Below, piece by piece: positions 3,216 through 42,602 of a stretch of DNA of 64,000 nucleotides (within the stretch, counting starts at the first letter, position 1; each line of letters starts with the position of its first letter). The notes under the pieces were generated by a model. It did no database searches. It was given only the letters and a program-made list of their open reading frames with translations, and was not told the DNA's origin. The position numbers and the translations under genes were made by a program. The stretch covers positions 124,001-188,000 of IMG/VR virus record IMGVR_UViG_3300042465_005589. One strand, written 5' to 3'.

Positions 3216-4502
3216 TTAATTACTTAAAGGTGCTTTAATTGTTGGATGTGATTGATAGTTCTCTAACGTAAAATCTCCTATATCATATGTAAATATCCCA
3301 CCACCAATTCTCATTTTGTTATTGGGGTTAATTGTTATATTTGGTAACTCATAAGGTTCTCTTGTTGTATAAGGAATTTTATACGAATCATAATATTCGC
3401 TTAATCCACCGCCAAACGGCATTAATTCATCAACCGCTTTATTATAATTTTCTTCACCCATCGCTTGTTTTAACAATTCTGTTCTTTCTTCGTGAGTATA
3501 TTTTCTTCCAATTTGTTCTTTAGCTGCATCAATATGATTTGAATATAAATGGACATCCCCTAAATTTCCAATCAACTGGTCAGGAACCATATTAACTTCT
3601 TTTGCAATTATCACCAATAACAATCCATATGAAGCAATGTTGAATGGTAAACCTAAGAATGTATCTACTGAACGTTGATTCCACATTAAAGAGATTGCTC
3701 TGGTTGGTATGTTTAATTCATCTAAAACATCAGATGTTATTCTTTTATCAGGAGTCCAATCAAATTTTCTTTCATTTTTTAAAATGAAAATTTCAAATCT
3801 TTGGTCGTAACTTAATTCTCTTGTATAAACTTGAAATCCATAATGACAAGGTGGAAGAACCATTTGGTCTAATTCTCCAACATTCCAAGCATTAACCATT
3901 AATCGTCTTGAGTCTGGGTTTGTTTTAAGGTCGTTGATTAGGTTTTGGATTTGGTCTATTCCATTTTTTAATCGAAATATTTCATTTACTGTGTAACTAC
4001 TTATAAAGTTTTCAATTGTATGCGGCACTAGAATATCTTTACCACCCCAATTTCTCCATTGCTTACCATAAATTGGACCTAACTCACCCCACTTATTAGC
4101 AAACTCATCATCTGTTTTGATTTTGTTAATGAAAATTGTTTGTGTCATAATTTCATCAGAACCAGTTTTAGTTCCGATAAATCCACCATTAACACTTGAA
4201 ATTGGAAACCAATCTGAATTAAATAAATAATTCTTATAAGCATCACCATTCCAAATATGACAATTATTATCAACCAAATACTTAATGTTGGTATCACCTC
4301 GAAGGAACCAAAGAAGTTCTGTGACGATTGATTTCCACGGCATCTTTTTGGTTGTAAGTAATGGGAATCCTTCTGACATTTTATGTCTGATTTGTCTTCC
4401 AAATACTGATATTGTCCCCGTCCCGGTTCTGTCTTTCTTTTCTATCCCGTTATCCAAGATATCTTGGAGTAAGTCTGTGTATGTTTTGTCTAATTTATTC
4501 AT
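3216..4502 (-). CDS. thyA: thymidylate synthase with insertions
   Basis: DRTGTGT, FPLLTTKK, ELLWFL, GPIYGKQWR, SRR, PPCHYGFQ, NQRSVDTFLGLPFNIASY, YQSHPTIKAPLSN. Confidence 0.97.
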   Translation of the reverse strand: MNKLDKTYTDLLQDILDNGIEKKDRTGTGTISVFGRQIRHKMSEGFPLLTTKKMPWKSIVTELLWFLRGDTNIKYLVDNNCHIWNGDAYKNYLFNSDWFPISSVNGGFIGTKTGSDEIMTQTIFINKIKTDDEFANKWGELGPIYGKQWRNWGGKDILVPHTIENFISSYTVNEIFRLKNGIDQIQNLINDLKTNPDSRRLMVNAWNVGELDQMVLPPCHYGFQVYTRELSYDQRFEIFILKNERKFDWTPDKRITSDVLDELNIPTRAISLMWNQRSVDTFLGLPFNIASYGLLLVIIAKEVNMVPDQLIGNLGDVHLYSNHIDAAKEQIGRKYTHEERTELLKQAMGEENYNKAVDELMPFGGGLSEYYDSYKIPYTTREPYELPNITINPNNKMRIGGGIFTYDIGDFTLENYQSHPTIKAPLSN

Positions 4503-13964: not shown

Positions 13965-15038
13965 TTAAATCAACGAATCATATGTTTGTTGTCCAACAAT
14001 TCCATCTACCGCAAGACCATTATCTTTTTGATATTGTTTAACCATTTCTTTTGTGGTTGGTCCATAAATACCGTCACATTTTTCAACATCATCTTTACAT
14101 GCTTCAACATCAGTAGTTATAGAACCCGAAGTTGTTCCACTATATCCAATTTCAATTAATATTTTTTGAACTTGTTTAACTAAATGACCTTTCGCATTTA
14201 ACCCAATGACTTTATTATCTTCAGTTACCGCTGACCAATCTGTATCAGTTGGTTGTACATATCCGGATGCGTTTTTTGAAATATCTTTAAATTTAAGTAC
14301 AGGTTTTGTTCCATCCCACTCCCAAGTACCTCTACTTTTACCAGTTCCTTGACCTTTATTCCAAACATAAACATCACCATCATCATAAATTCTCATTTGG
14401 CTATCAGTATCATTTGGGTCAGTAGAATTGACTATCACTAAATCCCATATATTTTCATCATCTTCTAATTTATCCATTTTATCAAATTTCCAATTTGAGT
14501 CTTTATTACCTTCATAATATTTAACAACATCTTCCCATTTATCTTTATTTGTAGATTCAGTTTTTGCTGGTGCCGCAGCCGCAGGTGCAACATCTTTCAA
14601 TGGTTTTGTTATTTTTTTAAATGTTAATACCGGAAATTCATCACCATCAATATTTAGTTTAATAGGTGTTGTAATAACAGATTTAAACTTATTTAGTCTT
14701 GTAATAATTTTATTTAAATCATCTCCTTGACTAAATTCTCCTTTAATCATATCGGTAAAACTAGAATAACCTGTTTTTTTATCGGCAAATAATGTTAGTA
14801 ATCGATGAAGTTCACTTGCATATGTAATCTTATTAAGACCATCTATTATATCTTGAGGCTCAGTTCCCATTCCGGATGCACCATCAATCATATTTTTGTA
14901 TGCAAGTTGAGCGTTTTGTTCTTTTTTACTAACAGGGGGGCGTTGTTCACCAATTTCTTGTTCTGAAATAACAACACCTCGTTGATATCCCAAAAGGTAT
15001 TTCATATACCCAAGTTCTTCTGTAATTATATTTTTCAT
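13965..15038 (-). CDS. annexin-like repeat plus C-terminal peptidoglycan-binding domain protein
   Basis: MIDGASGMGTEPQDII...GYSSFTDMIKGEFS (annexin-like); VKQVQKIL...DGIYGPTTKEMVKQYQKDNGLAVDGIVGQQT (PG_binding_1). Confidence 0.7.
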   Translation of the reverse strand: MKNIITEELGYMKYLLGYQRGVVISEQEIGEQRPPVSKKEQNAQLAYKNMIDGASGMGTEPQDIIDGLNKITYASELHRLLTLFADKKTGYSSFTDMIKGEFSQGDDLNKIITRLNKFKSVITTPIKLNIDGDEFPVLTFKKITKPLKDVAPAAAAPAKTESTNKDKWEDVVKYYEGNKDSNWKFDKMDKLEDDENIWDLVIVNSTDPNDTDSQMRIYDDGDVYVWNKGQGTGKSRGTWEWDGTKPVLKFKDISKNASGYVQPTDTDWSAVTEDNKVIGLNAKGHLVKQVQKILIEIGYSGTTSGSITTDVEACKDDVEKCDGIYGPTTKEMVKQYQKDNGLAVDGIVGQQTYDSLI

Positions 15039-20463: not shown

Positions 20464-22050
20464 ATGTCAAATATCATAAAATATAATTTAAGTACATCAC
20501 CAAATTCAATACAATCAGGTAATTTTAATGTTGCTGTTAATAATACTCCAACAAATTTAACCGGATTTTATAACGGAATTTCCCCAATAAATGGGGGTTA
20601 CACCATTTACATTAATAAAGAGTCTAATGGACCATCCATTTACGTCCCACAAAATGATAGTGATTTAATTCAAATAGTTAAACAATTGGGGGGTAATGTT
20701 TCAACTGCAGCGGAAGCTTTGGTTTGGATTAATTCTCAAAGTAATATGACGGTTCTAAATAATAATTACCCCTCAATTGTAACCAGTGGACTTGTATTAA
20801 ATGTAGATGCAGGATTTGTATCTTCATACCCAAAAACCGGAACAACTTGGAAAGATTTGAGCGGTGGTGGAAATAACGGTACTTTAGTTAATGGACCAAC
20901 TTATAGTAGTGGGAGTATAGTTTTTGATGGCGCGGATGATAGAGTTCAGACAACATATTCTCCAAATTTTGGGGATTTTACAGTTTGTCTTATTTTTAAA
21001 GATAATGGTTCAAATGCTTGGGGGAGATTAGTAGATAAATTATATACTACAGGTTTTTTCATTTCAAGCTATTTTGCATCATCAGGCGCTAATTACGTAG
21101 GCGCCGGAATAATAGAGCCTAATTATCCTTACGGAATAGCACTTCCTTATGAATCAGGAAAGTATCACTATTTCGCCTCAGTTAGAAACGGAACAACTCA
21201 TACAATCTACCTAGATGGTATTACCCAAACCACAAGCAAAACAGTATCTTCTAATCTTCTAGATAGTACTTCTATCGCCTTTGGGGATTGGAGCGGGGGG
21301 GTAAGTCAACCTTTTAAAGGTGATTTACCATATGTTCAAATTTACAACAGAGCACTCTCAGCCGCTGAGGTTCTACAAAACTATTACGCAGGACTACAAA
21401 GATTTATACCAACAGACGGATTAGTACTTTCATTAGATGCTCAAAATACAAATTTATATGCAATCTCTCCAACCACAGCATACGATGTGAGTGGGAATAA
21501 TATAAATGGTACATTAACAAATGGTGTTCAATATGTTGGTGATGGAAATGGTTCATGGAGATTTGACGGGGTTGATGATGTGATAACATTAGGTTATCAA
21601 CCATTATTAAATAATACTGATATAACACAGGAAGCTTGGGTTAATGGAAATTCTTTTACGAGTTGGCACGGAATTATTTCAAACATGCCTTCTTGGGGGA
21701 CAGGGTTTAGTTTACAAATTGGTATAATACAAAATATTGCGGCAATGGTTAGTGGGACTTATTTGAAAACTTCTTGGGCGCCCTCTGTAAATGTTTGGTA
21801 TCACATTGTGGCAACACATAGAAGTAGTGATAATTTCACTGCATTATATGTTAATGGTGTTTTAGAAAATACAACAACGCAAGCGGTAACTTATTCTGAA
21901 AATGCGATAACAACAATAGGGGTTTTTTATACTTCAGGGTCATTACCATTTAATGGTGAGATTGGGTCTGTTAAAACATACAACAGAGCATTAACGGCAA
22001 CAGAAGTAACAACAATATATAACGCAACTAAATCAAGATACGGATTATAA
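20464..22050 (+). CDS. tandem LamG/concanavalin A-like domain protein (virion/tail-associated)
   Basis: Two VTSGLVLNVDAG...WKDLSG.GNNGTLVNG...FDGADD...YNRALSAAEV units. Confidence 0.85.
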   Translation: MSNIIKYNLSTSPNSIQSGNFNVAVNNTPTNLTGFYNGISPINGGYTIYINKESNGPSIYVPQNDSDLIQIVKQLGGNVSTAAEALVWINSQSNMTVLNNNYPSIVTSGLVLNVDAGFVSSYPKTGTTWKDLSGGGNNGTLVNGPTYSSGSIVFDGADDRVQTTYSPNFGDFTVCLIFKDNGSNAWGRLVDKLYTTGFFISSYFASSGANYVGAGIIEPNYPYGIALPYESGKYHYFASVRNGTTHTIYLDGITQTTSKTVSSNLLDSTSIAFGDWSGGVSQPFKGDLPYVQIYNRALSAAEVLQNYYAGLQRFIPTDGLVLSLDAQNTNLYAISPTTAYDVSGNNINGTLTNGVQYVGDGNGSWRFDGVDDVITLGYQPLLNNTDITQEAWVNGNSFTSWHGIISNMPSWGTGFSLQIGIIQNIAAMVSGTYLKTSWAPSVNVWYHIVATHRSSDNFTALYVNGVLENTTTQAVTYSENAITTIGVFYTSGSLPFNGEIGSVKTYNRALTATEVTTIYNATKSRYGL

Positions 22051-41787: not shown

Positions 41788-41899
41788 ATCTATAAATATA
41801 ACATGAGGGTAAAAATTACCCCCGTCTTTTGAACGAGGGTAATTATTTTATTTTTTTACTCTCATTAAATAAAAAACCCATCCGGAGATGGGTTTGATA

Positions 41900-42013
41900 T
41901 TAGTACTTATCTTTGTTGTGTTTTGGTTTTCGATTGTAAGCTTTTTTACTTTTTTGAACAGATGGACGAGATGCTGCCCATATTTCTTGCATTGTGAAGG
42001 TAATTGTTTTCAT
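41900..42013 (-). CDS. ArfA-like small basic peptide (37 aa)
   Basis: MKTITFTMQEIWAASRPSVQKSKKAYNRKPKHNKDKY; own promoter (42056) and terminator (~41875). Confidence 0.55.
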   Translation of the reverse strand: MKTITFTMQEIWAASRPSVQKSKKAYNRKPKHNKDKY

Positions 42014-42116
42014 AGTTTCTGTATGTGTTAAGGTTATTGTTTCATTTTGACAAGACAAAAGTAATTCTTTTAATCGAATTATACAAGTATTTATTAAAAT
42101 ATTTATATTTATTATT

Positions 42117-42602
42117 ATGAAAGAATTAATTAGACGGATATTAAGAGAATATACAGAACCAAAACCTATTTTAGTATACGAAATTGTTGTAAACGATATT
42201 TTAAGTGAACAAGAGTTTATTAGACAAATATATAGAAATAACGACAATTTAATTAATTTATATAAAAACCCACATTCTCAGGAATTCATAGGAAATAAAA
42301 CCTCATTTCAAAGAGTTGACCCAGATGAGATTAACGATTCAATAATGGATATTGAACCGGCAATAATCAGTTCAGCTAAAAGAGTAATGGAAACATGTAT
42401 TACAAGATGTTCAATTAATGTTATCGATAATATAGCAGGAATTGATTACCACATGTGGTTAAATGGAACAAATAATAGGATTAAAATAATAATTAACACA
42501 TCAATCAGACATCCCAACCATCTAAAATTTAGAGTTAATGAATCTCCAACAATAATAGTGGATAGGTACGGTGACATATCAACAAGAAACATATATAATT
42601 AA
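42117..42602 (+). CDS. leader-bearing hypothetical protein
   Basis: MKELIRRILRE. Confidence 0.8.
   Translation: MKELIRRILREYTEPKPILVYEIVVNDILSEQEFIRQIYRNNDNLINLYKNPHSQEFIGNKTSFQRVDPDEINDSIMDIEPAIISSAKRVMETCITRCSINVIDNIAGIDYHMWLNGTNNRIKIIINTSIRHPNHLKFRVNESPTIIVDRYGDISTRNIYN

Follow-up and report, generated by a model that had tools for sequence, protein, structure and literature searches.

In this study, we asked whether a 37-aa peptide encoded in a viral genome is a ribosome-rescue factor related to ArfA. An earlier note on the same DNA, made from the sequence alone, had proposed an ArfA-like peptide that is produced from a gene of its own and acts in ribosome rescue or in the mRNA channel. 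The window that we analysed is a stretch of 64,000 nt. It covers bases 124001-188000 of an IMG/VR virus record of 318,164 bp, which is complete by the CheckV estimate. The phage genome has a GC content of about 31% and carries 23 tRNA genes clustered on the minus strand outside the window (G000:C1:65121-87996); no tmRNA gene was found in its 318 kb. A megablast search of the peptide region against GenBank phages gave no match. Twelve of the homologous loci are in bacterial assemblies, and because 11 of these 12 are from Bacteroidota (Flavobacterium, Flavobacteriaceae, Weeksellaceae and, as an isolate, Moheibacter lacus), the host very probably belongs to the Flavobacteriia. The carrier is a jumbo phage that most likely infects this class. 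Elsewhere in the window, a 428-aa thymidylate synthase (3219-4502, minus strand) matches the 266-position model PF00303 in two stretches, and this split suggests that the phage protein has an insertion. A 528-aa protein (20464-22047, plus strand) has a C-terminal concanavalin-A-like lectin/Laminin_G_3 domain, and the C-terminus of a 357-aa protein (13968-15038, minus strand) is endolysin-like by PHROGs.

The peptide gene reads MKTITFTMQEIWAASRPSVQKSKKAYNRKPKHNKDKY from 42013 to 41903 on the minus strand and ends with a TAA codon at 41902-41900. Upstream of it lies a 103-bp intergenic region in common with a divergent plus-strand gene (42117-42602), and this placement makes the peptide gene monocistronic. 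Its features are collected in Table 1. A GC-containing terminator hairpin, AAACCCATCTCCGGATGGGTTT, with its T-run begins 4 nt past the peptide stop codon. The alignment of nine loci showed different hairpin sequences at the same place in relatives, indicating that the terminator function is conserved while the hairpin sequence is replaced. Housekeeping promoters of Bacteroidota have the form TTTG / TAnnTTTG. The corresponding motif, TTG-N17-21-TAnnTTTG, occurs 40 times on the plus strand and 63 times on the minus strand of the 318-kb genome, compared with 14-23 times in shuffled sequences, an enrichment of about 3-fold. A sigma-70 consensus scan gave no convincing E. coli-type promoter (TTGACA/TATAAT) for the peptide gene, and the sigma-70 model was dropped as unsuited to a Bacteroidota phage, the Bacteroidota-type motif being present instead. 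The earlier note had described the 37-aa gene as monocistronic, with a promoter and a terminator of its own. This description was borne out by signals that could be mapped and are kept in relatives, with the correction that the promoter is of the Bacteroidota type and not of the E. coli type. It had also called the peptide short, stop-terminated and free of GKG, which the sequence bears out. An TATAAATA octamer is located in the divergent intergenic region at 42100-42107 (minus strand), about 90 nt upstream of where the peptide begins; in T4, this octamer is the late-promoter consensus.

Table 1. Features of the peptide gene and its flanks (positions in the window)
Feature	Position	Strand	Evidence
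Bacteroidota-type promoter, -33-like TTG element	42084..42086	minus	N20 before the -7 box; kept in 9 related loci
Bacteroidota-type promoter, -7 box TACTTTTG (consensus TAnnTTTG)	42056..42063	minus	TAnnTTTG at this place in 9/9 aligned loci
A/C-rich leader (5' UTR of about 35-42 nt), no Shine-Dalgarno sequence	42014..42055	minus	DNA-level conservation in close relatives
Coding sequence of the 37-aa peptide, including the stop codon	41900..42013	minus	Translation, purifying selection, family
Intrinsic terminator, 9-bp stem and 4-nt loop, then TTTTATTT	41865..41895	minus	Terminator scan

An ORF that is very short, lacks a Shine-Dalgarno sequence and has a start disputed among gene callers might be a chance frame in AT-rich intergenic DNA, or part of a conserved non-coding RNA. 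However, the comparison of 41 distinct homologous coding sequences gave a pN/pS of 0.26 in the ORF frame, with a pS of 0.74 that is near saturation, whereas pN/pS was 1.0-1.75 in four of the five other frames. One conserved arginine, for example, is coded by CGT or by AGA. The same frame recurs in 197 clusters at 50% identity, and the position of the stop codon is conserved among relatives. It is also established that Shine-Dalgarno sequences are generally unused in Bacteroidota. The results indicate that the peptide ORF is a real gene under purifying selection, and the non-coding reading, to which we assign hardly any probability, is effectively refuted. Database gene calls often run through the leader and give products of 54-73 aa. 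These calls, as well as a 115-aa TTG-initiated frame, were rejected, since in more distant relatives the protein begins with the MKT methionine, and only close relatives keep the upstream part, as conserved DNA.

We then considered the family to which the peptide belongs. The word search with the 44-aa in-frame reference as query found 11 clusters, and the profile search of 1.84 billion representatives returned the 197 clusters at E<=1e-3, 56 of which reached E<=1e-10; scanning IMG/VR gave 57 loci. Nearly all members are 35-60 aa long and follow the consensus MK.I.vT.QEIW.A.RP.V.K.KK.Y.RK.KHK. In a 35-sequence alignment, T7, Q9, E10, I11, W12, K21, K23, K24, Y26, R28 and K31 were invariant. 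Across the family H32 varies, and some chromosomal copies have KG or KP in place of KH. The KGKGS motif, and GKG itself, was absent from all of the approximately 185 family sequences examined. These results show a large and previously undescribed family of at least 197 clusters.

Most members lie in viral contigs and a few in Flavobacteriales chromosomes. The only cultured carriers found were Flavobacterium phages of the genus Immutovirus, whose copies are 65% identical and annotated as hypothetical. Bacteroidota do not generally have the family as a cellular factor, as only 1 of 401 genomes in a phylum-wide sample had a clear match; among Weeksellaceae, 4 of 201 genomes had a match. The neighbourhoods of 58 viral loci contained no conserved partner gene and no translation-related theme, and the phage neighbours, which include a family-B DNA polymerase, HtrL_YibB and unknowns, vary by lineage. 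In one phage lineage from IMG/VR (L009-L013), the peptide gene lies directly upstream of the family-B DNA polymerase gene and downstream of that for an HtrL_YibB-domain protein. In Flavobacterium MAGs (L162-L166), it is found just upstream of genes for a fusion of ParB_N with an N6/N4 DNA methylase and for an HTH_17 excisionase-like protein. The context of the copies in Flavobacterium assemblies points to a mobile element or prophage, not to the core chromosome.

To compare the peptide with ArfA (PF03889; YhdL of E. coli), we took the E. coli protein from NC_000913.3, which contains exactly the string that the earlier note had given for it. BLASTP aligned residues 16-33 of the peptide with ArfA 26-46, with 10 of 21 positions identical and a 3-residue gap at GKG, the same gap that the note had proposed; the E value of 0.003 is that of a single comparison. 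The ArfA profile search that the note had named as a check came out against it: with PF03889 (gathering cut-off 25.5 bits), the peptide gave no match at E<=1, the translated genome none at E<=10, and none of the 35 relatives matched. Searches of the peptide and its family against all PDB chains, ArfA included, by phmmer and hmmsearch gave nothing at E<=10, and NCBIfam gave no match for the peptide. Of the proposed ArfA likeness, the part that stands is the tail, which specifically matches the A-site/tunnel segment according to the shuffles, the decoys and the bridge through DUF7230 and phrog_6310 presented below; the part that does not is membership by PF03889, a PDB match, or a counterpart for the N-terminal half.

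By profile, the closest family to the peptide is DUF7230 (PF23876)/phrog_6310, both being 42-position models. The peptide scored 13.9 bits against PF23876 (E = 0.059), under the 27-bit gathering cut-off, and matched phrog_6310 at E = 0.0038. Among the relatives, 21 of 35 matched PF23876, all under the cut-off, with a best E of 2.5e-5. In hhalign comparisons, the family aligned to DUF7230 with a probability of 92.9 (score 34.1, E = 3.7e-7; column-shuffle null 8.7 ± 2.1) and to enterobacterial ArfA with a probability of 53.7 (score 26.8; null 9.1 ± 1.8), the latter alignment placing R16-Y37 onto R26-N50. DUF7230 in turn aligned to the phage ArfA peptides of KGKGS type with a probability of 79.7, and these to ArfA with 98.2; the family itself gave no match to the marine phage KGKGS-type peptides (probability 9.7). 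Column shuffling was used because the alignable segment is short and basic. The target-column shuffles had a mean of about 9 ± 2 and a maximum of 17, and in 0 of 150 were the observed DUF7230 and ArfA scores reached.

Similar results were obtained with a 183-sequence family HMM, for which the test set contained, among others, 3,963 six-frame K/N-rich decoys from the same AT-rich genome. The HMM matched 9 of 10 DUF7230 sequences (best E = 6e-7) and 103 of 121 ArfA sequences (best 16.6 bits), the latter always with residues 16-37 onto ArfA 26-50, whereas no decoy was matched, and none of 62 marine phage KGKGS-type peptides. The GKG gap fell at the same place (peptide KSKK-AY) in the BLASTP, hhalign and HMM alignments. 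A 51-aa protein of Pseudoalteromonas phage J2-1, annotated as 'alternative ribosome-rescue factor A' (L065:383-535), exceeded the cut-offs of both PF03889 (41.3 bits) and PF23876 (28.6 bits) over overlapping residues; in it an ArfA-like N-terminus is joined to a GKG-less tail, RVERDKTKYRRKKKHK. This double match suggests that DUF7230, which has a Pfam entry of its own, belongs to the ArfA superfamily as a GKG-less branch. As a lead only, DUF7230 and ArfA clusters were also among the nearest named neighbours of the peptide in a language model.

The similarity could still be of another kind. The region alignable with ArfA is about 22 residues long and of biased composition, so that the likeness may have arisen by convergence on a common binding site. 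A small basic protein with a different target, whether DNA, RNA or a protein, could have come to resemble ArfA and DUF7230 by convergence, or could share their ancestry without their function; the short K/R-rich stretch, scores below every curated Pfam cut-off, and phage neighbours that differ by lineage with no translation theme are all compatible with this. Against it, the order of the residues matters, as column-shuffled profiles never came near the observed scores, and the HMM separated 103 of 121 ArfA sequences from all K/N-rich decoy frames, while the J2-1 protein bridges the two families above the cut-offs of both. We regard a different target as doubtful. Judging by the alignments, the C-terminal 22 residues appear to be specifically related to the A-site/tunnel segment of ArfA, most likely through common descent via the GKG-less branch. 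The peptide as a whole does not qualify as a member of ArfA, since it falls below the formal thresholds of both ArfA and DUF7230, lacks KGKGS, has an N-terminal module of its own and is made from a normal stop-terminated mRNA.

The peptide was next mapped onto the published ArfA-RF2-70S structures. In ArfA, His21-Glu30 lie in the A site and residues 31-48 in the mRNA tunnel, with Lys44-Arg48 reaching the tunnel entry; the protein is active when truncated at N47 and inactive when truncated after M40, and its L19, L24 and F25 bind W319, V198 and F217 of RF2 (PMC5378476). The Lys-His motif contacts U534 of 16S rRNA (PMC6881298), and the KGKGS residues are individually non-essential for ArfA activity (PMC6299226). 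The basic tail of the peptide, RPSVQKSKKAYNRKPKHNKDKY, comprises residues 16-37 with the pattern R-P-x-V-x-K-x-K-K-x-Y-x-R-K-x-K-H, and residues 21-37 contain nine K/R plus H. In the alignment, R16-Q20 correspond to the A-site strand of ArfA and K21-K35 to the tunnel part, which is three residues shorter than in ArfA; K31-H32 fall on K44-H45, and the C-terminus falls at the equivalent of N50, the length of mature active ArfA.

Residues 1-15 form a strongly conserved hydrophobic module in which I11 and W12 are invariant. An AlphaFold2 model built from the family alignment (mean pLDDT 78) showed residues 1-7 extended, a helix at 8-15 (MQEIWAAS) and an unstructured tail. The module is 10 residues shorter than the 25-residue minidomain of ArfA, and no alignment to the A18/L19/L24/F25 region was obtained, indicating that these 15 residues are probably a different module from the RF2-binding minidomain. 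A Flavobacteriaceae RF2 keeps the residues that ArfA contacts, V198, F217 and W319, which would permit recruitment of the ArfA type. A structure-based pairing of the peptide and an RF2 fragment from Flavobacteriaceae (L182:1627-2508), run without controls, scored 0.00, which counts neither for nor against such recruitment.

That the ArfA likeness is confined to the tunnel segment, with an N-terminus unrelated to the RF2-binding minidomain, is also what would be seen in a channel plug. Such an inhibitor would fill the tunnel of vacant or stalled ribosomes with its tail and recruit no release factor, thereby blocking rescue by tmRNA-SmpB or ArfB, or host initiation, as a shut-off or anti-rescue device; the host-type promoter would make early expression possible. 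However, the invariant T7, Q9, E10, I11 and W12 point to a specific protein partner and away from a passive plug, and a syntenic chromosomal copy is stably inherited in a Weeksellaceae clade with SmpB and without ArfB. In the four Weeksellaceae genomes with a match, the peptide gene is at the same place, convergent with alaS, and the AlaRS proteins are 78-81% identical; this shared place beside similar AlaRS genes marks a vertically kept chromosomal gene. ArfB (NF006718 above cut-off) was found in 0 of the 4 carriers, compared with 127 of 201 genomes in the Weeksellaceae sample, and SmpB in 3 of the 4; since the four carriers without ArfB form one clade, they amount to one evolutionary event. 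A back-up rescue factor would fit this pattern, which favours rescue over inhibition, because trans-translation would be the only other rescue route of a carrier cell, in which an inhibitor is unlikely to be kept. We consider the plug improbable. The neighbouring alaS of all four carriers encodes the enzyme that charges tmRNA. In M. lacus (L168:3327-4180), the peptide gene follows a RelE/HigB-like and HTH pair, as judged by eye from the translations, and in a related MAG (L169:3664-3954) it follows a cREC_REC 'cyclic-phosphate processing receiver' gene (PF20274).

Compared with known rescue systems, the peptide resembles ArfA in being small, with a conserved hydrophobic N-terminus and a basic C-terminal tail, and in sharing R..V.K.KK...Y.RK.KH and the Lys-His motif (16-37 onto R26-N50). 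It differs in the missing GKG of KGKGS and in its first 15 residues, which cannot be aligned and bear no likeness to the L19/L24/F25 patch. ArfA is made from a truncated non-stop mRNA under tmRNA control, whereas the peptide gene has a normal stop codon and a terminator. Their hosts also differ: the peptide occurs in phages of Bacteroidota and a few Flavobacteriales, and ArfA, reported to be limited to Gamma- and some Betaproteobacteria, was detected in 0 of 1,956 FCB-group genomes (PMC11633108). No report of an ArfA-type factor in Bacteroidota was found in the literature searched.

DUF7230 comprises 42-50-aa proteins of Pseudomonas Pakpunavirus, phage Cassandra and Vibrio phages, whose hosts are Gammaproteobacteria. 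It has a GKG-less tail like that of the peptide, RPSVERDKTKYRRKPKHK, and is similar in size, in having its own stop codon and in its phage origin. Its N-terminus carries (K/R)-N-P-V-A, which is also seen in phage ArfA-like peptides, where the peptide family has T.QEIW.A. DUF7230 has no assigned function, and no mention of it was found in the literature searched.

The phage peptides of KGKGS type, such as those of Roseobacter phage CRP-212, Erythrobacter phage XM05, Citromicrobium phage RXM and pelagiphage HTVC027P (gp30), are likewise encoded by phage ORFs of 30-65 aa that end in a stop codon of their own, and have an ArfA-like tail, but score above the PF03889 cut-off and keep KGKGS and an NP(I/V)A N-terminus. 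Genome papers annotate such ORFs as ArfA (PMC8953757, PMC12753301); no functional study of phage ArfA-like peptides was found in the literature searched. In IMG/VR (L082-L161), short KGKGS-type ORFs of 30-65 aa with their own stop have the consensus +NPIAKxVRTPKYKxRvVKPKKGKGSYKR. Viral contigs carry them very commonly: of 581 pattern matches, at least 173 were confirmed, and many of the contigs are only 4-9 kb long. Salmonella phage Arash encodes an ArfA homologue, gp99c (L063:317-541; PF03889 67.8 bits), that is annotated as 'ribosomal protein L2', and Pseudomonas phage pf16 has an unannotated ArfA-like frame of 72 bits (L064:386-535), over which a CDS is annotated on the opposite strand.

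ArfT of Francisella and BrfA of Bacillus are also small RF-dependent rescue factors with basic tails, likened to the peptide here by description only. ArfT is 40 aa long and does not depend on a non-stop mRNA for its regulation (PMC6299226), while BrfA shares only the Lys-His motif and the beta-strand augmentation of RF2 (PMC6881298). The literature regards the two as independently evolved, and they serve as precedents for independent small rescue factors without the exact ArfA motifs.

Taken together, the peptide is probably a phage-carried ribosome-rescue, or ribosome-channel, factor. The more specific form of this reading, in which the peptide would bind the vacant mRNA channel and recruit a release factor through the conserved N-terminal module, we hold at even odds (a probability of about 0.5). 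Where a ribosome has stalled at the 3' end of a broken or non-stop mRNA, the tail would sense and occupy its empty mRNA channel, and the N-terminal module would then recruit and activate a class-I release factor, so that peptidyl-tRNA would be hydrolysed and the ribosome recycled without tmRNA tagging. Because the gene has a normal stop codon and a terminator, unlike arfA, the factor would be made whenever the promoter fires and not just upon failure of trans-translation. The analysis shows the gene with its transcription signals, its conservation, its family and how the tail is related in sequence; we infer ribosome binding, release-factor recruitment and the benefit to the phage alike. A wider picture, possible but held only tentatively, is that the family is the missing RF-dependent rescue factor of Flavobacteriia: a GKG-less relative of ArfA with a new RF-recruiting N-terminal module, kept chromosomally in an ArfB-less Weeksellaceae clade and spread mainly by phages. 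The phages would produce it constitutively, keeping ribosomes free when host or phage nucleases or mRNA-cleaving defences create non-stop messages, and with DUF7230 and the KGKGS-type peptides it would represent a common, unstudied form of phage-encoded rescue.

If the family works in the proposed way, Bacteroidota and their phages would come within the range of RF-dependent rescue, and the KGKGS motif and the minidomain at ArfA's N-terminus would turn out to be replaceable. At its size the peptide can be synthesised, which makes the idea directly testable. With ArfA-like ORFs in hundreds of viral contigs, ribosome rescue would then be a widespread auxiliary function of phages.
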